DNA of 64,000 nt, from IMG/VR virus record IMGVR_UViG_3300033143_006101, positions 1-64,000 of that record; one strand, 5' to 3'. Below, in pieces: positions 15,194 through 58,700 of this stretch. The notes under the pieces were generated by a model. It had not been told where the DNA came from. It did not search any database and saw only the letters and a list, made by a program, of their open reading frames with translations. A program made the position numbers and the translations under genes. Each line of letters begins with the position of its first letter. Position 1 is the stretch's first letter.

Positions 15194-15195
15194 CT

Positions 15196-15648: not shown

Positions 15649-15659
15649 AGGATTATTTA

Positions 15660-22245: not shown

Positions 22246-22284
22246 TTAAAAAGCCCTAAAGATACCTTCTTTAGGGCTTTTTAA
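22246..22284 (+). terminator. rho-independent terminator (potentially bidirectional)
   Basis: AAAAAGCCCTAAAGA-TACCT-TCTTTAGGGCTTTTT. Confidence 0.85.
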
Positions 22285-22332
22285 TAGATTTAAAAAATTA
22301 AGCATTTCCTTTACAATTTTGTACTTCAATCA

Positions 22333-28698: not shown

Positions 28699-28744
28699 TT
28701 TTTTAACAGTAATGTATTAAGAAAATGACTTGAGAGGTATAATT

Positions 28745-42856: not shown

Positions 42857-42865
42857 TAAAAAAGT

Positions 42866-42892
42866 ACTTAAAGTTACTTAAACTTTTACTAT
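42866..42892 (+). promoter_or_regulatory. putative late promoter ACTTAAA-N16-CTAT
   Basis: Motif copy upstream of the gp25/gpJ/glycosylation/fibre operon. Confidence 0.55.
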
Positions 42893-42913
42893 CTATTTAA
42901 ATAGGAGTTAAAT

Positions 42914-43354
42914 GTGGCAAGTGGATTACAAATAGTAAATGGAGATTTTGTTATAGGGCATACAGGAGCTGTTGAAATAGTTGAAAAAGGTCCTAAATGT
43001 CTACGTGATTTTGGAAAGATGCTTCAAACCAGTTCAGAATCTTCAGATAATCAAACAGAATACTTTAGGTATAATCCGACTTATGGTAGTCTATTAGATA
43101 AATTAATAACACATAATATGAGCAAAAGCACTATTCTAGAAATAGCAAGCTCTCTTTTATATGCTACAATACAAAATTATCTCGAATTACAGGAAACTAG
43201 AGACAATTTAACTGCAGGGGAAATTATAATAGATGTAAATTTTGATGTAAATTTTGATGTGCGTACCCCTGGACTTTTAGTAATCCCGATGTCGATAACT
43301 ACTTCAGAAGGAGTAACATATAATCTTGGGGAGTTTGAGCAGAGGTTCGTCTAA
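42914..43354 (+). CDS. baseplate wedge subunit (gp25-like)
   Basis: NGDFVIG...NPTYGSLL; directly upstream of gpJ. Confidence 0.7.
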   Translation: MASGLQIVNGDFVIGHTGAVEIVEKGPKCLRDFGKMLQTSSESSDNQTEYFRYNPTYGSLLDKLITHNMSKSTILEIASSLLYATIQNYLELQETRDNLTAGEIIIDVNFDVNFDVRTPGLLVIPMSITTSEGVTYNLGEFEQRFV

Positions 43355-44817
43355 TGATTATTAAAAATACTAATGATATTCGTACAGATCTTTTAAATGA
43401 ATTAAATACAGCTCTACCTGATTTAGATCTAACAGAGGGTACTCCCGAAAGAGATATGTTTGTGGAAACTCCAATAACCGGACAACTATCTGGTATATGG
43501 GATGGTATTATCTATGCACAAAAATTATATGCTCCTTTAGTGTATTATGATGATCTAGAAGAAGATGAAATTAATCAATTTTGTTCAACATATAATGTAA
43601 TTCAACGTCCTGCAACATATTCTGCAGGCACAGTTACATTTTATACTTCAACAGAACCTGTTAATGATATTGTTATTGCAGATGGATCCGAAATAGCAAC
43701 TATCGGAGCAAATCCTGTACGATTTGTAGTAGATGGGACATATACATTATATGCAGCTAATCAAGTAGCTTATTATAATGCAGTAAATGAGAGATGGGAA
43801 ATAACAGTCAGTGTTAGAGCAATCAATGCTGGACCGGATGAAAGAACAGCTTCTGGTACTGTTACTAGTATTATATCTGACATAGATGGTATTGATGGTG
43901 TTAATAATGATGAATCAATTACTGGTGGAGAAGATGCAGAGACTGTTATTGAAAGATTAAGACGGGTTAATGAAAAATTTCAAGGTAGAGATTTAGGTGC
44001 TGATGCAGGATTAAGAAGCCATATTGGATTATATACACGTTATATAGATATAGTAGGAGCTAATGATCCCTTAATGGAAAGAGATGAGGGTCTTGGTGGG
44101 GCTATTGATATTTATATAATCGGAGAAGATTTAGAAACAAAAACAGATACTGTAAATATAACATCAACAGGACTTACTCTGTCTACTTCTGTTGTTAATT
44201 ATACATCAACTGGTATAACTTTTGAAAAGCAACCGGTCCATCAAATATCTGGTGTCGTAAAAAATGGAACAGTATTGAATACATCTTATTATACTTTATC
44301 TCAAGATACTGAAATACTAAGAAAATCTACTCAAGGATTTGATAAAGTTTTATTAACTTCTACTGGAATAAGTGCTATCGGTCCTTTTGCTGATGGGGAT
44401 GAGGTAAAAATTACATATAATTATAATAAGATGTTACATACTATAGAAGAAGATCTCAATTCAACAGGGAATCATTATCAGAATCGTGATTATTTACTAA
44501 GAGAAATGGATAAAGTATCAATAGCGGTATACATGAAATTTAAAGAGGTCTCGGGACAGGATTTTGATACGGTTGTAAGTTCGGTAGAATTAGAAGTAAG
44601 TACTTTTATTACAGGCATTAAAAATACAGGAGATGTACAGCTTGCTGACATTGAAGGTATAGTAAAAAAACATTCAGGTGTAGATAATGTAGATTTAACT
44701 ACAGCAGCTATAACGCCTACAGGAGGTGGTGTACTGTCTACACAAGGAGATATCTTATTAGGAAAGAATGAATATCCCGATCCAGGGATAATGACGTTTG
44801 AACGTTGGACTAGTTAA
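43354..44817 (+). CDS. baseplate J-like protein (gp6/gpJ) with inserted beta domain
   Basis: DLTEGTPERD, RPATYSAGTVTF, ITGGEDAET...RL, GGAIDIYI. Confidence 0.85.
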   Translation: MIIKNTNDIRTDLLNELNTALPDLDLTEGTPERDMFVETPITGQLSGIWDGIIYAQKLYAPLVYYDDLEEDEINQFCSTYNVIQRPATYSAGTVTFYTSTEPVNDIVIADGSEIATIGANPVRFVVDGTYTLYAANQVAYYNAVNERWEITVSVRAINAGPDERTASGTVTSIISDIDGIDGVNNDESITGGEDAETVIERLRRVNEKFQGRDLGADAGLRSHIGLYTRYIDIVGANDPLMERDEGLGGAIDIYIIGEDLETKTDTVNITSTGLTLSTSVVNYTSTGITFEKQPVHQISGVVKNGTVLNTSYYTLSQDTEILRKSTQGFDKVLLTSTGISAIGPFADGDEVKITYNYNKMLHTIEEDLNSTGNHYQNRDYLLREMDKVSIAVYMKFKEVSGQDFDTVVSSVELEVSTFITGIKNTGDVQLADIEGIVKKHSGVDNVDLTTAAITPTGGGVLSTQGDILLGKNEYPDPGIMTFERWTS

Positions 44818-44872: not shown

Positions 44873-46111
44873 ATGAAAAATATTATTATTATAAGTCCGG
44901 ACACTGTTCCGTTGACTTTAAAAGAGGGTTACCCTCAAACAATTAAAGAAGGAAAGCATGAATATCCTATTAAAGATAAGTGCACCAGAACAACAGCTCC
45001 AGGTAAAAGAAGCTGGATGTTTGCACATCATTTGTCACGTCAAAAGGATTTCGATGTTACCTTATTAATCCCCGAGTTAAATTTCCCACAAAGGGAATTT
45101 ATCGACACATCAGAAATTAACTTCAATATTCAACCATATAATTACAGATCTGCAAACTGGGAATGGAGTGCTGAATTAGATAGGAGACTAAAGAAATATG
45201 ATTTTGTTATAGTTCAATCTACTTCAGGAACAGGTTTTATAAATTGTTCAGTATTACCAAGAACAGTTAATGTAATTTTAGATGGTTGGGTGCCTCTCTT
45301 AGCAGAACTTCCTTGTGCTTTATTAAGTTATGGTAGAATACACAGGAAAATTTTCTGGACAAAGAAATTTCTAAGTCAATATCAGGATTTAATACGCAGA
45401 GCTAATTGTGTTCTTTATGCTAATGAACGACAGCATTACTATTATGAAGGACAATTTTTTATGAATCAGAAATTAGATTGGAGTGCGTTTAAATTCTCTC
45501 CTCTTTTGAAAGTACCTTATGGCATAGATAAGCATGATCAAATTGTACCTCAACAATATGATGAAGAACTTAAATTATTATGGTATGGACCAGTGTATCC
45601 TTGGTATGCACCAGAAATGTTACTAAAAGCCGTCCAGGGTAGAAAGGATATTCTCGTAGATTTCGTTGGGATCGTACACCCTCGATTCAAAAAAGTTTAT
45701 AATTCTTATTTTAAAAAGTTTTTTGAAGAAGTTAAAGATGAAAAAAACATTCGTATTGTAGAAGAATATTGTGATGATGATACTTCATTATTCCAGGAAT
45801 ATGATGCTGGAGTTGTATTAGCAAGAAATTGGTTAGAAGAAAAATATTCACATAGATGTAGGATTTTAGATATGATTTCTAAAGGTTTTCCTGTAATTTT
45901 GAATGAGGGAAATGCTTTATATGAAGAATCCTCCGCGTTACGTCCAGCGTTACATCCAGTTTCTACCACACATCTTTTAGAAGACTTATTAGAAATTAAA
46001 GAAAATAAAGCCAATCTAAAAATATCACAAGATGATTTAAATTATATGTATGAAGCAATGAGTTGGGAGAAAGTACTCACTCCTGTAATTGAATATATTC
46101 GGAGGTTCTAA
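44873..46111 (+). CDS. GT-B fold glycosyltransferase (GT4-like)
   Basis: KVPYGID, LLWYGPVYPWY, RILDMISKGFPVILNEG. Confidence 0.65.
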   Translation: MKNIIIISPDTVPLTLKEGYPQTIKEGKHEYPIKDKCTRTTAPGKRSWMFAHHLSRQKDFDVTLLIPELNFPQREFIDTSEINFNIQPYNYRSANWEWSAELDRRLKKYDFVIVQSTSGTGFINCSVLPRTVNVILDGWVPLLAELPCALLSYGRIHRKIFWTKKFLSQYQDLIRRANCVLYANERQHYYYEGQFFMNQKLDWSAFKFSPLLKVPYGIDKHDQIVPQQYDEELKLLWYGPVYPWYAPEMLLKAVQGRKDILVDFVGIVHPRFKKVYNSYFKKFFEEVKDEKNIRIVEEYCDDDTSLFQEYDAGVVLARNWLEEKYSHRCRILDMISKGFPVILNEGNALYEESSALRPALHPVSTTHLLEDLLEIKENKANLKISQDDLNYMYEAMSWEKVLTPVIEYIRRF

Positions 46112-46114
46112 TTT

Positions 46115-47185
46115 GTGGTGAAACAAAAGATATTAGTAGCAGGATCTGGTGGGATGATGGGATCTCATGCAGTAGATTATTTAATCAATAATTATGGAAA
46201 TGAATTTGAAGTGTACGGGGTGGACGATTTATCTGGATGCTACAAAGAAAATATTAATCCCAAATCAAAGTTTACTAAGATTGATTTAAGAGATGTAAAA
46301 GCAGTTAAAAAGTACTTTAAAAATAATTTTGGAAAAACAGGTATAGATTATGTGGTACATTACGCTTCTGCGGCTCATGAAATTAGGTCATTTTTTACTC
46401 CCATCGACAATATGTCTCGTAACGATGAGGCTTTCAGAAATGTTGTCACCTTTGCTTTAAAACATAAAGTAAAACATATAGTGTTTTTTAGTTCAATGAG
46501 TAGATATGGATCAGGAGTAGTAAAAGATGGAAATGGAAAAATAGTCATTAATCAAAAAGCACCATTTAGAGAATCTTATTTACCAGCTCCCGAAGACCCG
46601 TATGCATGCTCTAAAGTAGCATCGGAAAATCTATTACATGCATTACAAAATGTATTCGATTTCACTTATACTATTTGGATCCCTCACAATTGTTTTTCAC
46701 CGCGACAATATGTTGACCCATATCGTAATGTTTTAGCTATTTGGATGAATTTAGTACTATTAGGTAAAGAATGTGTTATCTATGGAACTGGGGAACAACA
46801 AAGAGCTATTTCTTGGGTGGATGATTTTAATCCTGTTATTTGCAAATCAATTATGGATCCAAAGACATATGGACAAGCATTCAATATTGGAGGAGATGAG
46901 AACAAATCTCTTAATGAATGGTATGATATTATAAGAGAAGTTACTGGATATGATAAAGAATCAGTACATTATGATCCTCGACCAGGAGAAGTCTTTAATG
47001 CATATTGTAAACATGATAAAGCAAAGCTTATGTTAGGATTTAAAAATGCTACTCCGTTTAAAGATGCTATTGCACAAATGTGGGAGTACTTTAAAAAGAA
47101 AGGACCGAGAAAATTTAATTATATAGATTATCTTGAGATTGAAAATGAAAAAGTACCAGTTACTTGGAAAAAGAAGTTATTTTAA
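46115..47185 (+). CDS. NAD-dependent nucleotide-sugar epimerase/dehydratase
   Basis: VAGSGGMMGS, FFSS, PYACSK (YxxxK), IYGTGEQQR, RPGEV. Confidence 0.9.
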   Translation: MVKQKILVAGSGGMMGSHAVDYLINNYGNEFEVYGVDDLSGCYKENINPKSKFTKIDLRDVKAVKKYFKNNFGKTGIDYVVHYASAAHEIRSFFTPIDNMSRNDEAFRNVVTFALKHKVKHIVFFSSMSRYGSGVVKDGNGKIVINQKAPFRESYLPAPEDPYACSKVASENLLHALQNVFDFTYTIWIPHNCFSPRQYVDPYRNVLAIWMNLVLLGKECVIYGTGEQQRAISWVDDFNPVICKSIMDPKTYGQAFNIGGDENKSLNEWYDIIREVTGYDKESVHYDPRPGEVFNAYCKHDKAKLMLGFKNATPFKDAIAQMWEYFKKKGPRKFNYIDYLEIENEKVPVTWKKKLF

Positions 47186-47200
47186 TAAGGAGAAAATGAT

Positions 47201-47824
47201 ATGATACTATTTGGAGATAAGATAGTTCCTTGGGAAGCTCAAGAATTTTTAAAAATACTTACTATTATTCAAGCAAATACAGTCATAGATTATATACGAT
47301 TAAATATGCTATGGCAATGTGCTAAACAAGTAATTACTTTAGATGGGGATGCTGCAGAAGTAGGAGTTTATAGAGGAGGTTCTGCAAGATTATTATCTGA
47401 AGTGTTACAAGGTAACTTGCATTTGTTTGATACTTTTGAGGGAATGCCGGAAACTAATCCAAATATAGATGTGCATAACGAAGGAGATTTTGCAAAAACT
47501 TCAATTGAAAAAGTAAAAACTTTTGTTGAAGCAGGACCAGGATCTGTCTATATCTACCAAGGTATTTTTCCGGAAACTGTAGAAGATTTTGATGAGGATA
47601 TTACATTTAAATTTGTTCATATAGATGTGGATATCTATAAATCTACAAAAGAAGGTTTTGAATTCTTTTACGATAAAATGATTTCAGGAGGAATTATGGT
47701 ATGTGATGATTATGGATTTAAAACATGCCCAGGTGCTAAAAAAGCTGTAGATGAATTTTTTAAAGATAGAGATGAAAACCCAATTTATATACCAACAGGA
47801 CAAGCAATAATAATAAAATTATAG
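47201..47824 (+). CDS. TylF/MycF/NovP-family sugar O-methyltransferase
   Basis: GDAAEVGVYRGGS, LFDTFEGMP, FVHIDVDIYKS, GGIMVCDDYG, GAKKAVDEF. Confidence 0.9.
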   Translation: MILFGDKIVPWEAQEFLKILTIIQANTVIDYIRLNMLWQCAKQVITLDGDAAEVGVYRGGSARLLSEVLQGNLHLFDTFEGMPETNPNIDVHNEGDFAKTSIEKVKTFVEAGPGSVYIYQGIFPETVEDFDEDITFKFVHIDVDIYKSTKEGFEFFYDKMISGGIMVCDDYGFKTCPGAKKAVDEFFKDRDENPIYIPTGQAIIIKL

Positions 47825-47834
47825 GTGGTGCCAT

Positions 47835-48587
47835 ATGGATGCTTTAGATTTAATTATAATTAGTGGGCTTCCTAGATCAGGAACAACTTATATCCACAAT
47901 GCACTTGCCAGATATGGTAAGAAAAGTAATATATTTGGTATTAGAAACGTAGTTAGGAATAGTAGATTTTGTGATTTAGAATTAGAAGATCATCAGTATG
48001 TAGAAACAGATGCTTTTTATGATTCTCCTTATTTTTCTAATTTTTTACCTGATTATAAGTTGCCTCATTGGATAACAAGTGAACCAGCAATATGTAATAC
48101 ATATAATGGTGATTTGACAGATATTGTATTACTATTATTAAAACATTGGAGAATAAAATTATCTAATCCAACATTAACTGTAATTTATAAACATCCACAA
48201 GCCAGTTTTAGAATACCTTTAACATTACCAAATAATAAAATTCTTTATATTATATGCAATAGAGAAAAAGAAAACTGGAAGAATGCTGTAATAAAAGATA
48301 AATTTACAGATAGTGTAGATATAAATGCTGGTGCTCCATGGGTAAAAGCAAATTGGGGAAAGGAATGGAAAGAACCAATAGAATTAGATGATAGATTAAA
48401 TCATTTATATACTATTTGGAACACTATTAATAACAAAATATTATCAGATCCAAATTTAATCACATTCGAATTTAGTTATGAAAATCCCGAAAGAGACACG
48501 AATAAAATTTTAAGTTATTTAAATTTAAAAGAATTTGTAAAAGATGCAATAAAAAATTGGAAACCATTAAATAAAAAAGGACAATAA
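47835..48587 (+). CDS. sulfotransferase-like protein
   Basis: N-terminal ISGLPRSGTT PAPS-binding loop; KHP; SYE. Confidence 0.65.
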   Translation: MDALDLIIISGLPRSGTTYIHNALARYGKKSNIFGIRNVVRNSRFCDLELEDHQYVETDAFYDSPYFSNFLPDYKLPHWITSEPAICNTYNGDLTDIVLLLLKHWRIKLSNPTLTVIYKHPQASFRIPLTLPNNKILYIICNREKENWKNAVIKDKFTDSVDINAGAPWVKANWGKEWKEPIELDDRLNHLYTIWNTINNKILSDPNLITFEFSYENPERDTNKILSYLNLKEFVKDAIKNWKPLNKKGQ

Positions 48588-49367
48588 ATGAATCTATTAG
48601 GTGGATCTTTATTCGTACATAACGGATTAAAATATGATTATTGTTTAAAAGAAGCTGTAGAGAGTCTTTTAGATTTGTGTGATGAAGTAGTTATACTTGA
48701 TGCCGAAAGTGACGATGGTACTTTAGATTTTTTACATAAAATGGCTAAGGAACATTCCAATTTAAAAGTATATGATCATGGAAAATGGGAATGTGCATCA
48801 GACTGGAATAGATTACGACTACTTGCTAATGAAACAAAAAATATATTAAATACCGAATGGCATTTCATGCTTCAAGCAGATGAAGTTATACATGAAAATT
48901 CTTTTGATGCAATTCGAAAAGCTATAAGTGATTCCCAAAAACACGATACTTTTTGGGGGTACAGAATAAATGTGTTTAAAGATTTTGATCATTATATAGC
49001 GTTTAATAGTAAAACCAAACCATGCGGGGATAAGATAATTAGATTAGGAAAAACGTATATTGATGCTATAGGAGATGCTGAATCATTAAGTCTAACACAT
49101 CATAGTAATAAATATTTATCAAAAATAATAATGTTTCATTATGGTATAATAAGAAAACCGGATATTATGTTAGATAAATATATAAGCATGCAATCATGGT
49201 TTTTTGATCATGGGAAAATAGATCCAAGAATATTAGAGATGAAAAAAACAGATGGAATATTTAAACCAGAAAAAATAATAGAAGGTATAACATTAGATAA
49301 ACTTAAATGGACACATCCTAAATATGCTGAAGAATGGGTAAAAGAACGAAGACATTTTTATGAATAA
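48588..49367 (+). CDS. GT2-family glycosyltransferase
   Basis: CDEVVILDAESDDGT, WHFMLQADE, MFHYG. Confidence 0.85.
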   Translation: MNLLGGSLFVHNGLKYDYCLKEAVESLLDLCDEVVILDAESDDGTLDFLHKMAKEHSNLKVYDHGKWECASDWNRLRLLANETKNILNTEWHFMLQADEVIHENSFDAIRKAISDSQKHDTFWGYRINVFKDFDHYIAFNSKTKPCGDKIIRLGKTYIDAIGDAESLSLTHHSNKYLSKIIMFHYGIIRKPDIMLDKYISMQSWFFDHGKIDPRILEMKKTDGIFKPEKIIEGITLDKLKWTHPKYAEEWVKERRHFYE

Positions 49368-49388
49368 CATAAAGTAGGAGAAAAATAG

Positions 49389-51128
49389 ATGAATAACTTT
49401 ACAAGTATTATAATAATTAATTGGAATGGGGTTCGATTTTTAACAACGGCTATTAGTTCTCTTTACAGATTCAGGAATAAAACTCCTTTTGAAATAATTA
49501 TAGTAGATAATGGATCCACAGATAAAAGTGTAAAGTATATAAAACGTATCACACATGAAAAATCAAATATAATAGCTATTTTTAATAAAGATAATAAAGG
49601 TTTTACAGTTGCTAATAACCAAGGAATAGAAGCTGCTACTGGAAAATATGTAATGCTTTTAAATAATGATATAGAAATAAGAGGCAGTGAATGGTTAGAT
49701 AAAATGATTAATTTTCTAATAATAAATCCAGAAGCAGGTGTAATAGGACCGCGTGGTGGAATTCTAACTAAAAGTTTAGAATTTATAGGCATAAAACCAA
49801 ATGAATATAATGGTATGGTAGATTATATCGAAGGATGGTGTTTTTTATTTAAAAGATCACTTGCTGAAAAAATTAAATTATGTCGTGAAGAACTATGGGA
49901 TATGAAAGCAAATTATCTATGTGAAGAAATGTTTATCTTTGCTGAAGATTCAGAATTTTGCCAACGTTCTAAAATGTTAGGACACGAATGTTATCAAATA
50001 GGTAACGTACCTATTCATCATTTTGGAAATTCCACTATTAAACATCAAGTAAAAGAAAATCCCGATGCAGATTACGATTATAAAGATGTAAGTAATGATA
50101 GTACTCAAATATTAAAAAATCTATTAAATAATAAACAATTAGTTAATACTGATATAAAAAAGATTTTAATAATGAGAGGTAATGCTAGAGGAGATGTTTT
50201 AAATACCACACCAGCTATAAAAGCATTAAGAAAAAAACATCCTGATGCTTTTATAGGTTTTGTTTGTTTTTATCCTTCTTTTGATATTTTAAATCTAAAT
50301 CATGATTTGGATTGTGTTTTTCCTGTTCTTGAAGAAACAATACATGGATTTCATCCAAAATTACTTCAGTTTGAATGGGATGAAATATATCATTTAGGAG
50401 ACAAAATGTTTCCAAGTATGAAGACAGTCATAGACCATTTTTACAATAGTGATGCAATAATAGATACTAAACATGAATTAATGGCTTCGCAGGATGTGAG
50501 TACAAGAATGAAAAGAGGAGCAGCAAAGAAACCTTATTCTAAGATTTTTGCTGAAATGATTAATATTGAATTAGATGATTTAAAACCTACTTTAAATATC
50601 AGCTCAAAAGTAATAAATGATGCCAAAAAGTTATTACAACATTTAGATAAAAAAAGAAAAACAGTAGCTTTATGTCTTGATTCTCATTGGATAACACGTA
50701 CTTACCCTATACCCAAAAGAACAAATATAATACATAGTTTATTAAAAGAATACAATGTAGTATTATTAGGAATAAGTAGTTATCGATTTAAAACACCTGA
50801 AGCTAATCATTTTGTTAATCTATTAAATCGAACATCAATAGAGTTATTATGTGCTATATTAAATCAAATTGATGCTATTGTTACAATAGATACATTAACA
50901 CTTCATATAGGTTTAGCTTATAAAAAACCAATGGTATCTCTATGGAATATAACAGAACCATTTCATGTAATGTCATACCAACCAAAGAATCAAATAAAAT
51001 TATTTTCGGATTTAGCATGTTCACCATGTTATTTAGAAGTCTGCACAAATCATAATTATGCTTGTTACAACCAACTCTTCCCAGAACGAATTGTAGATGC
51101 ATTACATTATTTAATAAAGGATAAATAA
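49389..51128 (+). CDS. GT2 + GT9 (heptosyltransferase-like) fusion
   Basis: N-term IIVDNGSTD, NKGF..ANNQG, LLNND, EDSE; C-term RGDVLNTTPAIKALRKKHPDA, TIDTLTLHIG, CSPC...C...C. Confidence 0.85.
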   Translation: MNNFTSIIIINWNGVRFLTTAISSLYRFRNKTPFEIIIVDNGSTDKSVKYIKRITHEKSNIIAIFNKDNKGFTVANNQGIEAATGKYVMLLNNDIEIRGSEWLDKMINFLIINPEAGVIGPRGGILTKSLEFIGIKPNEYNGMVDYIEGWCFLFKRSLAEKIKLCREELWDMKANYLCEEMFIFAEDSEFCQRSKMLGHECYQIGNVPIHHFGNSTIKHQVKENPDADYDYKDVSNDSTQILKNLLNNKQLVNTDIKKILIMRGNARGDVLNTTPAIKALRKKHPDAFIGFVCFYPSFDILNLNHDLDCVFPVLEETIHGFHPKLLQFEWDEIYHLGDKMFPSMKTVIDHFYNSDAIIDTKHELMASQDVSTRMKRGAAKKPYSKIFAEMINIELDDLKPTLNISSKVINDAKKLLQHLDKKRKTVALCLDSHWITRTYPIPKRTNIIHSLLKEYNVVLLGISSYRFKTPEANHFVNLLNRTSIELLCAILNQIDAIVTIDTLTLHIGLAYKKPMVSLWNITEPFHVMSYQPKNQIKLFSDLACSPCYLEVCTNHNYACYNQLFPERIVDALHYLIKDK

Positions 51129-51129
51129 T

Positions 51130-51462
51130 ATGAAAGGAAAGTGTGCGAAAGTAACTACTATAGCTATAATAGTAAATAATGGTGAATACTGGGTAGGAAC
51201 AAATTGGTGTGAAATCCCACAAGAAACGTGCCCAAGAGATGAACAAGGTTTTAAAACAGGTGAAGGGTATGAGTTATGTAAAGATGTTTGTTTACAGAGA
51301 TATCATGCAGAAATAGATGCTTGCATTAATGCTGGATTAAATGCGAAAGGAGCAGATTTGTATTTAATAGGTCATTACTATTGTTGTGATGATTGTAAGA
51401 AAGTCATGAAAGAATTTGGTATAAAAAATATTCATATATTTAGTAAATCAGATAAGGAATAG
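51130..51462 (+). CDS. zinc-dependent cytidine/dCMP deaminase-like protein
   Basis: HAEIDA...GADLYL...CCDDC. Confidence 0.75.
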   Translation: MKGKCAKVTTIAIIVNNGEYWVGTNWCEIPQETCPRDEQGFKTGEGYELCKDVCLQRYHAEIDACINAGLNAKGADLYLIGHYYCCDDCKKVMKEFGIKNIHIFSKSDKE

Positions 51463-51465
51463 AAA

Positions 51466-52191
51466 ATGGAAAAATGCATTTGTAATCATAAAAAAACAAT
51501 AGAATCTTTTACTATCAAAGTTAATGAAATGGAATTAATATATGCACGGTGCAATAATTGTTTATCATACAGAATGATGAATCCTCTTAATACTGAAGAA
51601 ATACTTGAATATTATAATAAAGAAAAACCAACTCGAGTATCTGCAGATTTTAGAAAAGCTTTAGCACATACTGCAAATGAGGATTTTAAAGCATTAAAAC
51701 AATATAATACAGATCATGTATGTAGAGGAAAAAGATTATTAGATATAGGATGTTCAGAAGGTACTTTTGTCCAGGTTACTGCACAACGAAAATATGATGC
51801 TTATGGAATAGATATAGCTACTGAATTAATTGCATATGGAAAAGAAAGAGGGGTGGCTCTTGAAGTAGCAGATTACTTATCATTTAATAAACAATCTTGG
51901 GATATAATAACATTACATGATGTATTAGAACATGTATATCAACCAAGAAAATATTTAGAAAAAGCTTACACAGAGTTAACTCCTAGTGGAATAATCCAAC
52001 TTAGATTTCCAGCATATATTTATGCTAATAATTTGGAAACATGGGGGCATGCAAGAACAGATCATAATTGGTTGTTTAATATACAAGGGCTTATTGTAAC
52101 ATTAACTGAGATAGGATTTGAAAATTTCAGAGTCCTAGATTACAAGCATGGGGCATACCCGGGTTGTGTTATGATTATGTGCCAAAAATAA
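51466..52191 (+). CDS. class I SAM-dependent methyltransferase with N-terminal zinc motif
   Basis: LLDIGCSEG, YGID, DIITLHDVLEH, LTPSG. Confidence 0.85.
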   Translation: MEKCICNHKKTIESFTIKVNEMELIYARCNNCLSYRMMNPLNTEEILEYYNKEKPTRVSADFRKALAHTANEDFKALKQYNTDHVCRGKRLLDIGCSEGTFVQVTAQRKYDAYGIDIATELIAYGKERGVALEVADYLSFNKQSWDIITLHDVLEHVYQPRKYLEKAYTELTPSGIIQLRFPAYIYANNLETWGHARTDHNWLFNIQGLIVTLTEIGFENFRVLDYKHGAYPGCVMIMCQK

Positions 52192-52217
52192 ATGAGATGA
52201 ACTAAAAGGAGATTAAT

Positions 52218-53180
52218 ATGAATTTAGGAAAGGATCCCATTATTCAACGATGGGAAAATAATTACGATGAAAATGTACTTAATAAAGCATTTAACGGAGA
52301 AGATGTAAGACCTTATAAATTTTTACTAAATAATACACATTATCATAATGTTCCAGTAGTGCTGGTGGCTGCAGGACCATCATTAGATAATAATCTAAAA
52401 TACCTTAAAGATTTTCAGAAAAATGCTATTATTTTAGCAGTTGATGTTATCCTTTTTAAACTACTAGAATACGACATAATACCAGATTTTGTGGTTAATA
52501 TAGACCCTTCTGATATGTTTATTCGCTTTTGGGAGGATTTAGACACATCAAATTTAACTCTTATTTGTCCCACAACAACACATCCAAAAGTGCTACAAAC
52601 ATGGAAAGGAAGAAAGTTCTTTTATAATCAAATAGATCAAAAGAAATCAGAAAAAGGAAGAGCTCTTAAAAGATTAATAAAAACCACAGCGGGATATGGG
52701 AAAGTAATCAATCGCTATTTTATAGGAGCAACATCGGCTCAAATAGCATCAATATTCAATCCTGATCCTTTAATCTTGGTTGGATATGATTTTGCATATA
52801 CTGGTGGAAAAGCTTATTGTGACGGATTTTTAGAAAGAAAAATATACGATGACACAACAGAAAAAGGATCACCAGAACATATTAGAAATATTAATTCACT
52901 GAAGTATAGAGAACGAAATGAAGAAATGAAAGTAAAAGATATTTATGGTATGGAAGTATATACATCAAAACAGCTTAACTTTTATAGCATTGTATTAATT
53001 CATTTACTTTATAACGAATTACGCATTAAGAACGTAATTAATGCAACTGAAGGTGGTGTTCTAAAAGATACCCCAAACATGTCATTAAAAAATGCTTTAA
53101 ATCAATATTGTAAATCGGAAATCCAAAAGAAAGATGTATTTAGTTTAATTAAAAGAAAAAAGAAAAGGCGTAAGAAATGA
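52218..53180 (+). CDS. Maf/DUF115-family protein (motility-associated-factor glycosyltransferase-like)
   Basis: VLVAAGPSLDNN, IIPDFVVNIDP, LILVGYDFAY, VINATEGG. Confidence 0.8.
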   Translation: MNLGKDPIIQRWENNYDENVLNKAFNGEDVRPYKFLLNNTHYHNVPVVLVAAGPSLDNNLKYLKDFQKNAIILAVDVILFKLLEYDIIPDFVVNIDPSDMFIRFWEDLDTSNLTLICPTTTHPKVLQTWKGRKFFYNQIDQKKSEKGRALKRLIKTTAGYGKVINRYFIGATSAQIASIFNPDPLILVGYDFAYTGGKAYCDGFLERKIYDDTTEKGSPEHIRNINSLKYRERNEEMKVKDIYGMEVYTSKQLNFYSIVLIHLLYNELRIKNVINATEGGVLKDTPNMSLKNALNQYCKSEIQKKDVFSLIKRKKKRRKK

Positions 53181-55738
53181 TAGGTGATATAAATAATTTT
53201 GTTCTATCCTCTAGAAGTCTAGAAAACGGCACAACAACTCTTACTTTTGAATTCGATAAGCCTAGTGGAGATTATGGTGCTTACAAATTATACCAGAAAC
53301 TTGCTGGTGGAGGTTTTGAAGAAGCCAAATTAAGAATAGATTATGCTCATTATAAAGAAGATTATGAAGCTGATTACACCTACGAAGCAAACAATAAAGT
53401 TTATTTCGAATACTCTTTTGGACCAGGAATAACAGATGGCAGATTAATAGAATTCAGATTAAGGGCTATCTCTGTTGCAAACGAACTCTCAAATCCTTCT
53501 TCAACTTTAGATATCTATATAGCACCTTCTATACCAACAAATTTTTTAACTACTTATAATGGTTATGAAATAAATCTAGATTGGGATGATTTAAATACTT
53601 CTACAGGAATGAATTCTCACGTATTAAATTTTATTGTTAGAAGAAAGGGTGTCACAGAAATTCCTACTAGTGCAGTAGAATATGATACAGAAACATATAC
53701 ACTTACACATACATCATTTACAAAAGGATCAGCATTATGGGTAATTGATATTGCTAAAAGAAGTAAATGGTTTGGTAATATAACAACAGAAGGTGAATTT
53801 GTTTTATCAGATGCAAATAAAATTACTTTATCAAGTGACACTGCCTCAAACTATACTATTTTAAAAGATAATCTAAGATTTTTGATAGAGAAGAGCTCAG
53901 ATATAACAAATTTAGGATATCCAACTACAAGTGCTTTTATAGATACTACTTTTACAATTGATTATTATTATATATATACTGTAGCTGTTGAAGGGGGAGA
54001 TAGTCAAGAAAGTGAAGAAGTTAAATTTCCTTTATTTGCAATAGATGTTAATAAAGCATATCCTTATTTAAGATCCCCGGGTAATTCGGACAATGAAATA
54101 TTACAACAACCTTATTGGAAATATCTAAAAGAAGTTTTAATTGATGCAAACTATTATGATAAAACACAATTTGCAATTCCTTTTTTTAAACATGAAGAGT
54201 ATAATCTAAAAGGATATATAGGAGTTAGTGAATGTAAAGTAGATATATTCGTTAATAATATCTATGATCATACAGTAATATCGGGTACTTATGGAGAATT
54301 TGATATAGATTATCCATTTAAGAAAGGAGAAACAGAAATCTATATTCAAGCCAGGGATAAATACAATATAAAATTCTCAAGAAAGAGTGCCCCTTATAGT
54401 ATTAGAACACTTAATATGTATACATGGTTTTCTGCATTAGGTAAAGAATACAAAGAGATAGTAGATACTATTTTAGAAATTAGAAATACTGTGGATATAA
54501 CTAATGTAACTTATGGTGTCTATCAAGATGTTTATGCTCCTTTTATAGAGATATATAAATCTGGGGATGAAGATAGTGATGCTTTTATGACTATGGCATC
54601 AGAAGTATTTAAAGCATTTGAATATGCTGCATACGATAAAAGCTTAGAGATGGTATTAGATGCCTTTCAAGCGAAAATCCCAGAGTTTGATCATTATGAA
54701 TTATTTTTTAATAATGATCATGTGGAAACACATAAATCAGGAGGAACATTTACATATAGAGATAGCGTATTATCCGGGTTAAATTATTGGTATGGTATTT
54801 CAGCTTTTAATACTAGTACTGGAGCAGAAACAGATGCTACAACAATAAGAGTAGATAGAAGATGGTGGGAAAGAGGATATAATGGTATCAATGTTATAAC
54901 ATGGGATGAAATTAAAAATGCTGATAATTATAAAATATATAAAGGATCCGATGAAGAGGAATTGGCTTATATTACAACTACTCCAGCTAATTTATATTGT
55001 GATATAGGACAACATGCAGAAATTGTATCTAATACACCACGGTTGTTTAATTATACTAGTTTAGATAAACCCAGTAATATAGTAGTGGATAATGGTGTTT
55101 ATGTAACAAAAATCCATGAAAGACTTAAAAAACCCAATGCAATGACTATTGTTTTATTCGGAGTAGGTTATCAAGAAATTCCAGATATGGAAATGTATAG
55201 AATTCGGATTTTATTAGATAAACTTATTCCTCCAGAAATAAGATATACATTACTCTTTGCTCGGGATCCAGAAGTCGATGTTATAATTGGTAAAGAGATT
55301 ACTGCTAATGGTATCCATTACATGCTTAGTGGAGATATCTGGTCCGGATTATATTTAGATATTACAAACTCTAACCCACTCGAAGTAGTTACATCTAATG
55401 AGGTTCCTGAAGAATACTTAACATATACAGATATCGATGGTAGTACAGAAGAATATGATAATATAATTACAGCAATTTATCAATCAGATCCACAATCTGA
55501 TCCAAATGGGTTTAGTCATATTAGTTGGGAAGCAGATGGGGATCCTGGAGATATCATGTTTCAATACAGGATATCAGAAGATGGAATAACATTTAATGCA
55601 TGGTCAGAAGAAATAGATGCCATTGAAAATAGTATTAAAGTTTTTAGTGAAGATCCTGTTTCATTCGAATACAGACTTGTATTTTACTCTCCAAATTGGA
55701 GTGATACTGATAACGTAAGAGTTTTAGAGATAGTATAG
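53177..55738 (+). CDS. baseplate wedge/fibre-attachment protein with Fn3-like domains
   Basis: Fn3-like segments (FRLRAISVANELSNPS, YIYTVAV, ITWDEIKNADNYKIY); LDKLIPPEIRY resembles the gpI/gp7 C-terminus. Confidence 0.6.
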   Translation: MIGDINNFVLSSRSLENGTTTLTFEFDKPSGDYGAYKLYQKLAGGGFEEAKLRIDYAHYKEDYEADYTYEANNKVYFEYSFGPGITDGRLIEFRLRAISVANELSNPSSTLDIYIAPSIPTNFLTTYNGYEINLDWDDLNTSTGMNSHVLNFIVRRKGVTEIPTSAVEYDTETYTLTHTSFTKGSALWVIDIAKRSKWFGNITTEGEFVLSDANKITLSSDTASNYTILKDNLRFLIEKSSDITNLGYPTTSAFIDTTFTIDYYYIYTVAVEGGDSQESEEVKFPLFAIDVNKAYPYLRSPGNSDNEILQQPYWKYLKEVLIDANYYDKTQFAIPFFKHEEYNLKGYIGVSECKVDIFVNNIYDHTVISGTYGEFDIDYPFKKGETEIYIQARDKYNIKFSRKSAPYSIRTLNMYTWFSALGKEYKEIVDTILEIRNTVDITNVTYGVYQDVYAPFIEIYKSGDEDSDAFMTMASEVFKAFEYAAYDKSLEMVLDAFQAKIPEFDHYELFFNNDHVETHKSGGTFTYRDSVLSGLNYWYGISAFNTSTGAETDATTIRVDRRWWERGYNGINVITWDEIKNADNYKIYKGSDEEELAYITTTPANLYCDIGQHAEIVSNTPRLFNYTSLDKPSNIVVDNGVYVTKIHERLKKPNAMTIVLFGVGYQEIPDMEMYRIRILLDKLIPPEIRYTLLFARDPEVDVIIGKEITANGIHYMLSGDIWSGLYLDITNSNPLEVVTSNEVPEEYLTYTDIDGSTEEYDNIITAIYQSDPQSDPNGFSHISWEADGDPGDIMFQYRISEDGITFNAWSEEIDAIENSIKVFSEDPVSFEYRLVFYSPNWSDTDNVRVLEIV

Positions 55739-55748: not shown

Positions 55749-58700
55749 ATGCCATATATTACAGTTCCTACCAGAACCCAAACACTGTCATCAATGTATG
55801 CAGATATAAATCAGCTACAATCTAATATAAATGCGATGTTAGATGCATCCAAAGCGTTTACTGATTTAGCTGTTGATGAAGATGTAACATTTAGCGGTCT
55901 TACAGCAATGCGATTACTTGCTATTGATTCATCTAATAAAGTAGTAAATACTAATTTAAATCAATGGATAAATGGTACCGGTAATCAAATTACTGTTACA
56001 GATAATGGTAATGGAACAGTTACTATGTCTGCTCCTCAAGATATTCATTCTGGGGCATCTCCTACTTTTGCTGACTTGACTCTATCTTCTCCCTCTACAA
56101 TATATGGTTTAGATCATGATAGTTTTGCTGGTTATGTGGCAGCAGAGCATTTAAATTGGACAGTAAATACCGGAAGTGTTATTGATGATAATAACATAGC
56201 TGCAAGTTCAATTACACAACATGAAGGTAGTATTACTCATAACAATTTAGCAGGAGTTACAGCTAAAGAACATATAGATTGGACAGTTGATGCTGATCCA
56301 TATAATGTACATAAATTAAATATCACATGGGATTCTATAACACAACATGAAGCTCAGATCAATCATGACAATTTATTTGGATTTGTAGCACTTGAACATA
56401 TCGATTGGACTAATGCAACTCAGAATATAGATACAAGTGGTACAATTAATGGTACTACTTTAAAATATAATGAAATAGATATAAATAATAGTAACGCTCT
56501 TAGTAATGTAGTCTATTTAGATATAGACAATACATTTCTAGAAAATATGATTATAACAAAAGATCTTACTGTTATAGGTGATTTTATTGTAATAGGTGAT
56601 ACATATGCTGCAGAAGTTGAAACAGTGCTTATTTCAGATAATCTTGGTATTATTAATTATGGTGAGACTGGTACAGGCATAACAGCTGGTTTTGCTGGTT
56701 GGGAAGTAGATAGAGGTATTTATGCCGCTCCTTATAGATGGGGATTTGAGGAATCTACTGATACTTGGAGATTAGGTGAATCCTATTATGATATAGATGT
56801 AACTACTTCAACCGGAACTTTTGTAGTAGGAGATATAATTTTAACATCTACTGGAGAACGTGGTAAGGTGTTTGATATTACTGGAAGCGTTTTATCTACA
56901 GGTGTTCATGTAGGTGTTTTTTCTACAGGAATGTATGTATATACTTCTACTGGTGCAGCTGGAACAATCACATCCGTATCAGAAGTTGAATCTTTGCAAG
57001 CAGTTGCAACTCGAGAAGATAGTCCTACTTTAAATGGAATACCTTATTGGAATAATACACTTAAACAATTTAATACAAGTTCGAGTATTGTTTGGGATAC
57101 TTCAACGACAGGAGCAGCTAAAGGAGATCTATTAATACGTAGTAGTACTGGATTTACAAGATTAGCTGTTGGATCCAATGGACAAACAATAATAGCGGAT
57201 AGCTCTGAAACTACAGGGATTAAATGGGCCGGGCATGATTCACTTGATGAATATGTTGCCAATGAACATATAGATTGGACGGGGGCCAGTGCTGGAACAA
57301 TTGATCCTACAAATTTAGGATTACATGCAAGTCGACATGAAATTGGTGGGGCTGATCTTATAGATCATGATAATTTAACAAACACACATGATCTTACAAC
57401 TGACATTGATCACGATACAATTACAAATAATCATAATCTTACAACTGATATTGATCATGATCAATTAACAAATTTTGTTGCAAATAAACATATAGATTGG
57501 ACAGGAGCTAGTAATAATCTAGTTACATCTGGATACATTAGAATATCTAATAATGAAATTAGATTTTATGACAATGGATCCAATTATGTAGGATTTAAAG
57601 CTCCCGCTTTAACAGGAGATCAAATTTGGACACTACCTGATTCTGATGGAACTACAGGTCAAGTCCTAGCAACAAGTTCTGGTTTATTATATTGGTCTGA
57701 TATAGTTGCAACTTCTGTCATTTCGGATTCAGATGGTAATACATTATTAGGAACCGGTACAGGTACTAATTTAAGTTCACCTGATGCAACATATAATACT
57801 TTTATTGGTGTTAATGCTGGCTATGATGTCACAACAGGTGATTATAATTGTTATATAGGATATTATGCTGGTGAGAATACAGGAGTTGATGTACAATACC
57901 AAACATTTATTGGTGCCTATGCTGGACAGAACAACACTGCTAGTTATGCTACAGCAATTGGATATCAAGCCGGTTTAGCTTGTGCAGGTACTGGTGTAGC
58001 TATAGGGTATCTAGCTGGACAATCTGGTTTAAGTTATGGTGTGGCTATAGGACAGGAGTGTGCTACTGGAGGATTAGGATCAAGAAGTGTAGCAATAGGT
58101 TATAAATCATGTTTTGGTAATGCTAATGGAGCTCAAGATTGTGTCTTTGTAGGATATACAGCCGGTTTAAATAATGCAGGTGGTGATGGAAATACAGGAG
58201 TGGGTGCTAGTGCATGTAAAAATGCTGGTGCTAAAACTGGTAATACTGCTATAGGTAACCATAGTCAATATGATGCTTCTGGTAATTATAATACATCCTT
58301 TGGTGCTCATTCACTATATGATTGTGGTGGTGGTTATAATGTAGCAGTAGGCTATGAAGCTGGACATTTTGTAACTAATAATTATAATATACTTATAGGA
58401 TTTCAAGCTGGTTATAGATGTCAAGGTAGTTATAATATAGGTATTGGACGAAAAGCATGTGGAAATGATACAGGAGGAACTAAAGATTATAATGTTGCTA
58501 TAGGAGATATCTCCCTAACTGCAATAACTACTGCTGTTGATAATACTGCTATAGGTACTAATTCAGGAAGTGTTTTAACTACTGGTTCTTCTAATGTGTT
58601 AATAGGTCATGATGCTGGTAGTACTTTAACAACTGAATCAAATCTACTTTATATAGAAAATACAAATTCTGCAACACCCCTCATTTATGGTGAATTTGAT

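Follow-up and report, generated by a model that had tools for sequence, protein, structure and literature searches.

Virus-encoded glycosylation and related gene clusters

Glycosylation of virion proteins by phage-encoded enzymes has been described for mycobacteriophages (Freeman et al., 2023, as cited in PMC12619734), where glycans are attached at the C-termini of the capsid and tail tube subunits. The phage-encoded glycosyltransferases (GTs) in that study lie next to structural genes and vary between related phages. Transferases of the Maf family are found in flagellin glycosylation islands of Campylobacter, Aeromonas and Magnetospirillum (PDB 5mu5), together with methyltransferases, GT2 enzymes and sugar-nucleotide enzymes, and the content of these islands varies between strains. 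O-glycosylation of a protein, flagellin, is the only characterised function of this family. Polymorphic sugar-modification clusters of jumbo cyanophages such as P-SSM2 contain SDR epimerases/dehydratases, cupins, PfkB kinases, nucleotidyltransferases, O-methyltransferases and several GT families, differ between related phages, and are read as host polysaccharide modification (Iyer et al., 2021; PMC7824862). In giant viruses, clade-specific gene clusters for host-independent sugar-nucleotide synthesis and glycosyl transfer decorate virion surface proteins, as in Mimivirus fibril glycosylation and chlorovirus capsid glycans.

Here we analyse a locus in an uncultured 253-kb phage (IMG/VR record IMGVR_UViG_3300033143_006101), of which the first 64,000 nucleotides were examined (hereafter the window). 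Nine sugar-related genes lie within its tail-baseplate block, and its relatives carry a very different set of such genes at or next to the same position, mostly between the same two conserved transferases. Mycobacteriophage systems consist of a few GTs in roughly 50–70-kb siphoviruses of Actinobacteria, whereas the islands described here comprise 9 to about 23 genes, including sugar-nucleotide synthesis, methylation and possible sulfation, and sit in the baseplate/fibre module of jumbo myoviruses of a probably Gram-negative host, bracketed by a GT4-like and a Maf-like transferase. No sequence relationship to the mycobacteriophage enzymes was tested or found. In common with flagellin islands, the locus has an MptE-like/Maf catalytic domain, but the phage Maf of about 320 aa has only the central domain and is 25–33% identical to bacterial Mafs, many of which carry PF20157 and/or PF26154. 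There is no flagellin gene nearby and no nonulosonic-acid pathway in the island of the window, and the neighbouring gene encodes a phage structural protein. The cyanophage clusters are not described as fixed between baseplate J and a fibre gene, nor as bracketed by GT4-like and Maf-like genes; homology between the two sets was not examined. The giant viruses infect eukaryotes and have unrelated structural proteins; this comparison is an analogy only.

Gene content of the locus

The first-pass annotation, made from the sequence alone, described nine co-directional genes for glycan biosynthesis or modification at 44873–53180. This observation holds. All nine ORFs lie on the + strand at these coordinates with internal gaps of 0–26 bp, the gap after baseplate J is 55 bp, and ORF9 overlaps the following gene by 4 bp (53177–53180). 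Profile and structure searches, which had been named in advance as a check on the family calls, confirmed all nine or made them plausible, yielding four GT domains plus Maf.

The gene just upstream of baseplate J (42914–43354, +) encodes a 146-aa protein which is conserved in all relatives (tblastn, 35–54% identity). It has no Pfam or PHROG hit, and a gp25/W-like role is inferred from position only. Baseplate J, a gp6-like wedge subunit (43354–44817, +), is confirmed by PF04865 (2e-12) and phrog_6 (1.5e-23), has 68 homologues at 40–63% identity, and forms the conserved left anchor of the locus.

ORF1 (44873–46111, +; 412 aa) has no Pfam or NCBIfam hit, but is a GT-B (GT4-like) glycosyltransferase. 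Its AF2 model (pLDDT 96.2, pTM 0.94) matches retaining GT4 enzymes in a Foldseek search, with WbnH, GlgM, PglA, MshA, PimB', BshA and SdgB as top hits (E 1e-12 to 1e-9), and 16 of 42 aligned homologues carry Glycos_transf_1 domains (PF00534/PF13692). ORF2 (46115–47185, +) is an extended-SDR NDP-sugar 4,6-dehydratase or epimerase (PF01370, 3e-35) of unresolved specificity, as all NCBIfam equivalogs score far below their cut-offs. It is shared at 62–69% identity with a subclade, with homologues in the related loci L003 and L005. ORF3 (47201–47824, +) is a TylF-family sugar O-methyltransferase (PF05711, 7e-21, 75 bits against a cut-off of 23).

ORF4 (47835–48587, +) is a sulfotransferase-like P-loop protein with moderate support: the PF13469 hit (4.7e-4) is below cut-off and covers residues 7–42 only, but a PRSGTT motif is present at residues 13–18, and 77 of 100 atlas neighbours are sulfotransferase clusters (structural TM 0.53–0.58). 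ORF5 (48588–49367, +) is a small GT-A (GT2-like) glycosyltransferase of a mostly viral family. Its PF00535/PF13704 hits are weak, the GT2 hit being below cut-off, but the atlas shows a GT-A fold with TM 0.86–0.87 to viral small-GT2 clusters. ORF6 (49389–51128, +) is a two-domain transferase with an N-terminal GT2 domain (residues 6–131; PF00535, 1e-23) and a C-terminal domain of the heptosyltransferase family GT9 (residues 383–557; PF01075, 3e-16). Heptosyltransferase I and II models match at 1e-14, below cut-off, and a PDB hit was obtained with 3tov, a GT9 enzyme.

ORF7 (51130–51462, +) is a 110-aa zinc deaminase of the cytidine/dCMP deaminase fold, just above cut-off (PF00383, 26.2 bits against 25), with HAE and CxxC motifs aligned to the dCMP deaminase 2hvv. 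Its substrate is unknown, and tblastn found no counterpart in the related loci. ORF8 (51466–52191, +) is a class I SAM-dependent methyltransferase (PF13489, 2e-16, and related models), a class of enzyme which recurs in most of the islands seen, with analogous genes in loci L003, L004, L005, L010, L025, L026, L083 and L084. ORF9 (52218–53180, +) is a short Maf-like (MptE/DUF115) transferase (PF01973, 5e-34). A PseD-domain match (1e-14) is far below the cut-off of that model, the Maf structure 5mu5 is matched at E 4e-4, and about 60 clusters of relatives of 300–350 aa are found at 40–62% identity. The basic tail codons of ORF9 form the purine-rich stretch just upstream of the start of the next gene.

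That gene (53177–55738, +) encodes an 853-aa conserved structural protein, the right anchor of the locus, with 3–4 N-terminal FN3-like domains. Of its 38 homologues, most are about 700–730 aa long and cover about 82% of the query. The AF2 model is confident for residues 1–700, while the C-terminal ~150 aa are specific to this phage and could not be modelled. FN3 matches include phage tail fibre, tip-attachment and minor tail proteins. The proposal that this gene is a gpI-like wedge gene is not supported, as these structure searches returned FN3-like repeats and no wedge match. The next gene in the same block (55749–59363, +) encodes a 1204-aa tail spike or fibre protein (phrog_4636, tail spike, 1.4e-11; phrog_6002) with 20% Ser+Thr.

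Genomic context and comparison with relatives

The island sits inside a block of + strand genes from about 32.1 to 59.4 kb, in which gaps are at most 57 bp and the only + strand terminator-like site is one weak hairpin. A promoter at 42866, from which the cassette had been suggested to be co-transcribed with baseplate and fibre genes, found no support: a scan for sigma-70-type promoters gave no match there among the sites listed (27 weaker ones were not listed), and there is only a 57-bp AT-rich gap. Late co-transcription remains an inference from gene spacing.

A synteny comparison with related phages, likewise named beforehand as a test, shows that the notion of a cassette inserted between J and the next wedge gene is only partly right. 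ORF1 follows baseplate J directly in every relative, including two members with no cassette at that site: in L012 the order is J, ORF1 homologue, 853-aa homologue, and L015 shows the same order to its contig end. The variable part in the window is therefore ORF2–ORF9. An island of this kind lies in the baseplate/fibre module of all but one relative sampled, in most of them directly after J and the GT4-like gene. The order J, GT4-like gene, variable genes, Maf and 853-aa homologue recurs in independent relatives, and island length runs from 0 to about 21 kb with almost no shared middle genes. The Maf-like gene is the last gene and abuts the 853-aa homologue in five independent phages, in two of which the genes overlap by 4 bp. 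However, in one relative Maf lies in the middle of the island and in another the island lies after the 853-aa gene, so that this adjacency is common but not universal. The flanking transferases are about as conserved as the structural genes (ORF1 38–64%, Maf 42–62%, J 45–65%), whereas ORF3–ORF8 have no full-length homologue in the relatives, and only the GT2 domain of ORF6 finds distant GT2 genes at about 25%.

In 4 of 4 sampled phage loci outside the clade, Maf genes lie inside head or tail modules. Two of these loci, which share one arrangement, have tandem Mafs directly upstream of the Mu-gpT-type capsid gene. Three have NeuB within 10 kb, and two of those also a CMP-sugar synthetase gene, as in flagellar islands.

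Proposed function

Based on this dataset, we hypothesize that the locus is a lineage-variable glycan island built into the baseplate/fibre operon of a clade of uncultured large myoviruses, which most likely glycosylates the phage's own tail or baseplate proteins in the cytoplasm, late, before or during assembly. We hold this reading with about even confidence. The interpretation of the first-pass annotation, that the virion is a more likely substrate than DNA or host LPS and that the glycan has several residues, is partly supported: the virion is the most plausible substrate, and the recurrent position of the island, the Maf-853-aa adjacency and the Maf genes in virion modules of unrelated phages strengthen this idea, while the insertion site, the promoter and the wedge identity do not stand as claimed. 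Our analysis establishes the gene identities, the conserved bracket, the variable content and the placement of Maf genes in virion modules of other phages, whereas the acceptor, the timing, the glycan structure and its role are inferred.

In this view, host NDP-sugars would be remodelled by ORF2. Heptose precursors may be supplied with help from a D-glycero-beta-D-manno-heptose-7-phosphate kinase (HldE domain I type; 9195–10151, − strand) encoded 35 kb away (TIGR02198, 368 bits, above the curated cut-off of 345), a possible donor-pathway gene for the GT9 domain of ORF6, although this link is an inference. ORF1 and ORF9 would be the two fixed transferases, at least one of which attaches sugar directly to a structural protein. 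The best candidate acceptor is the FN3-rich 853-aa protein, whose start overlaps the ORF9 stop, followed by the 1204-aa fibre. ORF5 and the two domains of ORF6 would extend the glycan, ORF3 and ORF8 would methylate it, and ORF4 may sulfate it; ORF7 has no assigned step. As the middle genes differ almost completely between related phages, the glycan should differ from phage to phage, like a serotype, and may tune adsorption or shield tail proteins from host or environmental recognition.

By the above calls all nine proteins are sugar-nucleotide, transferase or tailoring enzymes, and the short phage Maf belongs to a family whose only characterised function is on a protein, with mycobacteriophage virions as a precedent for the outcome. 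None of the nine has a convincing transmembrane segment, and there is no flippase, polymerase or priming transferase. However, soluble GTs are also the rule in O-antigen and capsule pathways that borrow host lipid carriers and exporters, so the lack of membrane proteins is weak evidence. No experimental data exist: the lineage has no cultured member, and ORF1 and ORF9 have no tblastn match in 50,697 deposited phage genomes. The island of the window has no NeuB or CMP-sugar synthetase, so the donor for ORF9 is unknown, and no Ser/Thr-rich acceptor tract stands out in the structural proteins. The fold neighbours of ORF1 are GT4 enzymes acting on sugars, lipids, small molecules or protein (SdgB).

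Alternative explanations

The main rival, which we consider possible but less likely, is host surface remodelling, in which the island would make or alter an envelope polysaccharide (LPS core, O-antigen or capsule) during infection by use of the host's lipid carrier and export machinery, in order to block superinfection by other phages or to stop progeny from adsorbing to lysing cells. This is the published reading for the cyanophage clusters (PMC7824862), and the window also encodes the PfkB-type heptose-7-phosphate kinase, a cupin, the GT9 domain and an OMPLA-type phospholipase; kinase, GT9 domain and phospholipase point towards LPS chemistry. However, the island is embedded in the putatively late structural block and in most relatives bracketed by the same two transferases at the same place, whereas envelope remodelling for exclusion would be expected early in infection and is not tied to the baseplate. 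In addition, no priming transferase, flippase, polymerase or ligase is encoded, the Maf family has no known polysaccharide role, and Maf genes in other phages sit next to capsid genes.

DNA hypermodification, in which the transferases would glycosylate hydroxymethylated pyrimidines in phage DNA to evade restriction, appears unlikely. Phage GT-A and GT-B enzymes can append diverse glycans to 5hmC (bioRxiv 10.1101/2023.12.21.572611), and the modified base pathway could be fed by ORF7, a dCMP-deaminase-fold protein inside the island, and by a ThyS-like (thymidylate-synthase-like) protein encoded in the window (TIGR03283, 4.7e-25, below cut-off), which is interrupted by a LAGLIDADG domain, probably an intein. 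However, known DNA-glycosylation pathways cluster with ThyS, 5mYOX or C5-MT genes, while the ThyS-like gene here is 42 kb away in another gene block, and ORF7 is absent from every relative's island. T4 beta-glucosyltransferase is not among the 50 best fold matches of the GT4-like ORF1. O-methylation, possible sulfation and 4–5 transferase domains exceed any DNA glycan known to us, and the fixed position next to baseplate and fibre genes has no rationale under this model.

Modification of a host protein (for example flagellin or a pilin used as receptor) or synthesis of a glycosylated small molecule appears equally unlikely, for although characterised Maf enzymes act on flagellin, TylF-family methyltransferases and GT-B enzymes are common in glycosylated natural-product pathways, and a secondary-metabolite reading has been raised for a second cyanophage cluster (PMC7824862), no aglycone-building genes are present, the phage Maf lacks the N- and C-terminal domains that many bacterial Mafs carry, and placement within virion modules recurs in unrelated phages.

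General features of the contig and its relatives

The window comprises the first 64 kb of IMGVR_UViG_3300033143_006101, a viral contig of 252,876 bp, so that window coordinates equal contig coordinates. It is AT-rich (about 31% GC), carries nine tRNA genes, and encodes a contractile-tail phage, with a tail sheath at 28730-30106 (phrog_279), baseplate J at 43354-44817 (PF04865 and phrog_6), and a 1204-aa tail spike or fibre at 55749-59363 (phrog_4636). Megablast of the 13-kb region, and tblastn of ORF1 and ORF9, against 50,697 deposited phages returned no match. By protein comparison, the only cultured relatives are very distant: Bacillus phage G, Mycobacterium phage Phabba and Virus Rctr197k, with the sheath 23-30% and J 28% identical. 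A possible assignment to the so-called moraphages (PMC12619734) was considered, but the contig does not appear in the main text of that paper, and no link was established.

Domain assignment of the nine ORFs

The first-pass annotation had placed nine glycan-related ORFs at 44873-53180, and this observation holds: all nine lie exactly there on the + strand, with internal gaps of 0-26 bp, a gap of 55 bp after J, and an overlap of 4 bp between ORF9 and the gene for an 853-aa protein. Profile and structure searches had been named in advance as a way to test the family calls. Pfam confirms six of them directly, namely ORF2 (epimerase/dehydratase, 3e-35), ORF3 (TylF, 7e-21), ORF6 (GT2 at residues 6-131 plus GT9 at residues 383-557), ORF7 (a CDA-fold deaminase just above cut-off, with HAE and CxxC motifs), ORF8 (class I SAM methyltransferase) and ORF9 (MptE-like/Maf, 5e-34). 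The count of four glycosyltransferase (GT) domains plus Maf is correct. None of the nine enzymes reaches an NCBIfam equivalog cut-off, so that sugar identities are not assigned here.

ORF1 has no Pfam or NCBIfam hit. As it is conserved next to J, it was at first suspected to be a structural wedge protein, but structure prediction and the domains of its homologues showed a GT-B glycosyltransferase, and the idea was dropped. An exhaustive search found 355 relatives, of which the distant ones carry Glycos_transf_1. The AlphaFold model is very confident (pLDDT 96.2) and shows a predicted two-Rossmann GT-B fold, for which the closest solved structures are retaining GT4 enzymes (WbnH, PglA, MshA, PimB', BshA and SdgB; Foldseek E-values of 1e-12 to 1e-10 for the first five). 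At the level of sequence, the picture is mixed and does not decide on membership in the GT4 family: 16 of 42 aligned homologues carry PF00534/PF13692, and, as regards the E-x7-E motif, E322 is nearly invariant, yet position 330 is Arg rather than Glu.

ORF5 is a GT-A fold of a mostly viral small-GT2 family. ORF4 is sulfotransferase-like at moderate confidence. It displays a PRSGTT loop, and its structure-atlas neighbours are mostly sulfotransferases (TM 0.53-0.58, on a model of modest confidence), but PF13469 scores 20.9 bits against a cut-off of 27 and covers 36 N-terminal residues only, which leaves a PAPS-binding sulfotransferase neither confirmed nor excluded.

The C-terminal domain of ORF6 belongs to GT9, the heptosyltransferase family (PF01075, 3e-16, 59.9 bits against a cut-off of 22). 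Equivalence to LPS heptosyltransferase I, II or III was not supported, as TIGR02193, TIGR02195 and TIGR02201 score 34-54 bits against cut-offs of 135-185; donor use was not assayed. A lone minus-strand gene among the tRNA genes, at 9195-10151, encodes a D-glycero-beta-D-manno-heptose-7-phosphate kinase (HldE domain I; TIGR02198, 368 bits, above the curated cut-off of 345). It may supply a heptose donor for the GT9 domain of ORF6, 35 kb away, and both genes together suggest a heptose-containing glycan. However, no further gene of the pathway (GmhA, GmhB or HldC) was found among the ten small ORFs tested. A comparison of the kinase with genome contigs for host inference gave only a 39% match to a Methylophilaceae genome, which is uninformative. 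Next to the kinase, at 8322-9128 (+), a 268-aa cupin protein with a weak mannose-6-phosphate-isomerase C-terminal match may be a sugar isomerase.

Motility-associated factor (Maf) proteins are flagellin glycosyltransferases. ORF9 carries their central MptE-like/DUF115 catalytic domain (PF01973, 117.9 bits against a cut-off of 34.6) and matches the Maf structure 5mu5 weakly. It does not display the full-length Maf architecture: ORF9 is 320 aa long with PF01973 only, whereas bacterial Mafs in the same search are about 410-560 aa and many carry the N- and C-terminal domains PF20157 and/or PF26154, and NCBIfam PseD scores 54 bits against a cut-off of 670. Transfer of a CMP-activated nonulosonic acid to Ser/Thr of a protein was not measured. 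Neither NeuB nor a CMP-sugar synthetase was found in the window or its island, and for this reason ORF9 has no assigned donor. ORF9 ends in KRKKKRRKK (53150-53180), and the family consensus also ends in a basic tail. This tail was first read as possible DNA binding, but a simpler explanation is that its AAR/AGR codons form the purine-rich stretch just upstream of the start of the overlapping 853-aa gene, such that the tail may be shaped by translational coupling rather than by protein function.

Comparison with related phages

A comparison of gene order with relatives had likewise been named as a test of the proposed insertion between J and the next wedge gene. Baseplate J has 68 homologues at 40-63% identity, all from metagenomes. 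The DNA surrounding many of them (loci designated L003, L004 and so on) was retrieved, and the genes of the window were mapped onto it. In every relative J is followed by an ORF1 homologue at 38-64% identity. ORF1 is therefore a fixed neighbour of J and not part of a recent insert. In L012 the order is J, ORF1 homologue and 853-aa homologue with nothing between; this locus continues with a 948-aa fibre-like protein and small ORFs, and has no sugar genes in the region seen. L015 shows the same order up to its contig end. In L013 the island lies after the 853-aa homologue, behind a second paralogue of ORF1 (14942-16183). A second paralogue is also present in L014 (17111-18334), and where it occurs it always lies at an edge of the glycan island.

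Where an island is present, its content differs almost completely between relatives. L003/L025 carries an ORF2-like epimerase, GT2s, a radical SAM enzyme with an intein, methyltransferases, two nucleotidyltransferases, GT1, HAD and a double GT2. L005 carries a UDP-glucose dehydrogenase with an intein, and L004 a triple GT2, RmlC and an RmlD-like gene. L010/L030 carries a triple GT2, RmlC, a GT2-GT1 fusion, TylF, a CmcI-type methyltransferase and a PglD-like acetyltransferase. In L014, a GT1-like gene, a DegT aminotransferase, Maf, a hexapeptide acetyltransferase and RmlC lie between two ORF1 paralogues. L013/L032 carries a GT2-GT2-GT4 fusion of 967 aa and an asparagine synthase. L026 carries a B12-radical SAM enzyme, GNAT, a nitroreductase, ATP-grasp, DegT, RmlA, RmlC and two SDR genes (RmlD- and RmlB-like). 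Inteins (Intein_splicing plus LAGLIDADG_3) interrupt island enzymes at L003 14706-16787, L004 19964-21461 and L005 14710-17085, the affected genes being a radical SAM enzyme and a UDP-glucose dehydrogenase. From the contig coordinates, the island measures about 8.3 kb in the window and about 6.7, 9.2, 15.4, 20.3 and 20.7 kb in other members, and it is absent in L012.

Of the middle genes of the window, only ORF2 has clear homologues elsewhere, at 62-69% identity. ORF3-ORF8 have no full-length homologue in the related loci; only the GT2 domain of ORF6 finds distant GT2 genes, at about 25%. The GC content of ORF4-ORF6 (26-29%) is below that of ORF1, ORF2 and J (32-33%), which fits later acquisition.

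The Maf-like gene is the other constant. It belongs to a compact lineage of 300-350-aa proteins with only the PF01973 domain, 40-62% identical to ORF9 and found on the same contigs as the relatives of J and of the 853-aa protein, while bacterial Mafs are 25-33% identical. Maf is the last island gene and abuts the 853-aa homologue in five independent phages (the window, L028/L025, L030, L031 and the ERZ1426824 contig), and the two genes overlap by 4 bp in two of them. In L026 Maf precedes an 1810-aa protein, and in L014 it sits mid-island.

The 853-aa protein

The 853-aa protein has 38 homologues, most about 700-730 aa, which match its first ~700 residues at 28-55% identity. The last ~150 aa are specific to this phage and could not be modelled. 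The model shows three or four N-terminal FN3-like sandwiches, as in many phage tail fibre, tip-attachment and minor tail proteins. The first-pass annotation had called this gene a gpI-like wedge gene, and similarity to gpI/gp7-type wedge proteins was sought by several routes. The protein has no Pfam, PHROG or NCBIfam family, a profile search against PDB finds nothing, Foldseek PDB, BFVD and VIA wide searches find only FN3 repeats, and hhalign against phage G gp189 gives a probability of 6%. Fold-search tools often miss single domains of long models, so this is not proof of absence. We therefore refer to a conserved FN3-rich baseplate or fibre protein and do not use the label wedge gene. In Bacillus phage G, the J homologue gp188 is followed directly by a 1109-aa protein with no transferase between them, which loosely fits the premise that J and the wedge gene are normally adjacent, although no homology between that protein and the 853-aa protein was found.

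Maf-like genes in other phages

A scan with the Maf alignment found Maf-like genes on 54 IMG/VR contigs, most of them outside this clade. Four of these loci were examined, and Maf lay inside the virion module in all four. L084 and L167 share one arrangement, with two tandem Mafs (10001-11996 and 3178-5021, respectively) directly upstream of the Mu-gpT-type major capsid gene. In L166, Maf lies between the portal and the SU10-type adaptor, and in L083 it follows a head-completion-like gene and precedes several large proteins. Tandem pairs of Maf-like genes in smaller, unrelated phages are also present in L038, L039, L042, L047 and L062. L083, L084 and L166 have a NeuB gene within 10 kb, and L083 and L084 also have a CMP-sugar synthetase gene, which together with NeuB is the classic donor pathway for Maf enzymes. 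L084 additionally has a B12-radical SAM and a methyltransferase gene nearby. This is a probable capsid nonulosonic-acid glycosylation system. NeuB itself is common on viral contigs: NeuB homologues matched 389 stretches of IMG/VR contigs, including giant-virus MAGs. The contig studied here is not among the best 80 of these 389, which carries no information on whether it encodes NeuB elsewhere. In the literature searched, we found no paper that describes Maf-like genes in phage structural modules.

Possible function of the glycan island

Based on this dataset, we consider it about as likely as not that the island glycosylates virion proteins. The island keeps a place inside the baseplate/fibre block throughout the clade, between J and the fibre genes here and in most relatives, which is the adjacency of glycosyltransferase and structural genes seen in virion glycosylation systems of the mycobacteriophage type, the available precedent (Freeman et al., 2023, as cited in PMC12619734). 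The block runs on the + strand from about 32.1 to 59.4 kb, with gaps of at most 57 bp and no convincing + strand terminator. Two transferases form a conserved bracket around the island, Maf and the 853-aa gene are adjacent as described, the only known acceptor of Maf enzymes is a protein, and Maf genes sit next to capsid genes in other phages. No lipid-carrier, flippase or polymerase genes are present, and none of the nine proteins has a convincing membrane segment. While the island, its bracket and the placement of the Maf-like genes are observations on gene content and order, the acceptor protein or proteins, the donor sugars and the timing are all inferred; no virion particles were analysed, and the lineage has no cultured member. 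The deaminase ORF7 has no explained role.

The interpretation given in the first-pass annotation, a cassette co-transcribed with baseplate and fibre genes and acting on the virion, is thus supported in part. The promoter proposed at 42866 is not among the sites shown by a sigma-70 scan, in which 27 weaker sites were not listed. The 57-bp gap at 42857-42913 is AT-rich and could hold a phage-specific promoter, but this was not examined.

Phage virion glycosylation and polymorphic phage sugar clusters are both known. New are a clade-wide glycan island of 0 to ~21 kb, fixed in the baseplate/fibre module, its bracket of a conserved GT4-like and a short Maf-like transferase, and the wider pattern of Maf genes embedded in virion modules of unrelated phages. 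This predicts glycan "serotypes" on phage tails, which is testable. A broader hypothesis, which we put forward only tentatively, is that a whole clade of uncultured jumbo myoviruses, and more generally many phages with Maf-like genes in their head or tail modules, build phage-encoded serotype glycans on virion proteins that would be complex, methylated and possibly sulfated. In this clade, a dedicated short Maf lineage and a GT4-like enzyme would serve as fixed protein-glycosylating transferases, and the middle of the island would be swapped by recombination. This would be a general and so far undescribed form of virion diversification in phages of Gram-negative hosts, comparable to O-antigen loci in bacteria.

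Virion glycosylation is established for giant viruses and for mycobacteriophages, where it affects antibody recognition. If large environmental phages carry interchangeable, multi-gene glycan islands next to their receptor-binding apparatus, the glycan coat becomes a second, non-protein layer of tail diversity, which could affect host range, adsorption, particle stability and recognition by host or grazer defences. The conserved GT4-like and Maf-like brackets give a simple genomic marker for finding such islands, and the short phage Maf would be a new class of protein glycosyltransferase with a non-flagellin acceptor. The result would also challenge the default reading of phage sugar clusters as host-surface or DNA modifiers.

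Remodelling of the host surface is the strongest alternative, although we regard it as unlikely. It is the published interpretation of similar polymorphic clusters in jumbo cyanophages (Iyer et al., 2021; PMC7824862), which include PfkB kinases and cupins, both also present in this window. ORF6 has a GT9 domain, and an OMPLA-type outer-membrane phospholipase A1 at 21489-22223 (+) (PF02253, 1e-37), followed by a strong terminator-like hairpin at about 22250-22290, suggests together with the heptose kinase a Gram-negative host; the phospholipase may also have a role in lysis or entry. Soluble glycosyltransferases are normal in O-antigen pathways, so the missing membrane proteins count for little.

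Glycosylation of phage DNA appears very unlikely. A thymidylate-synthase-like protein at 599-2404 (+) (archaeal-type model TIGR03283, 4.7e-25, below cut-off), interrupted by a LAGLIDADG domain that is probably an intein, could be a pyrimidine hydroxymethylase, and a deaminase sits inside the island. However, known DNA-glycan pathways cluster with their base-modifying enzymes (ThyS-family hydroxymethylase, 5mYOX or C5-MT; bioRxiv 10.1101/2023.12.21.572611), no such gene lies in or next to the island, and the ThyS-like gene is 42 kb away. Among the islands compared, the deaminase is unique to this phage, and T4 beta-glucosyltransferase is not among the 50 best fold matches of the GT4-like ORF1. 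Other targets appear equally improbable, and part of the likelihood is left unassigned.

Other genes in the window and related loci

A 1707-aa protein with DUF2341 and LamG/concanavalin-like domains, at 15819-20942 (+), lies in a stretch of about 40% GC, against about 31% elsewhere. This is a compositional island, and possibly a recently acquired adhesin or fibre. A PTH2-type peptidyl-tRNA hydrolase (3711-4247, +) and a small protein with a release-factor GGQ domain (ArfB/PrfH-like; 4930-5379, +) lie in the tRNA-rich region and together look like a translation-rescue toolkit. One relative, L005, has an astacin-type metalloprotease gene (8855-9514) inserted among the baseplate genes upstream of J.
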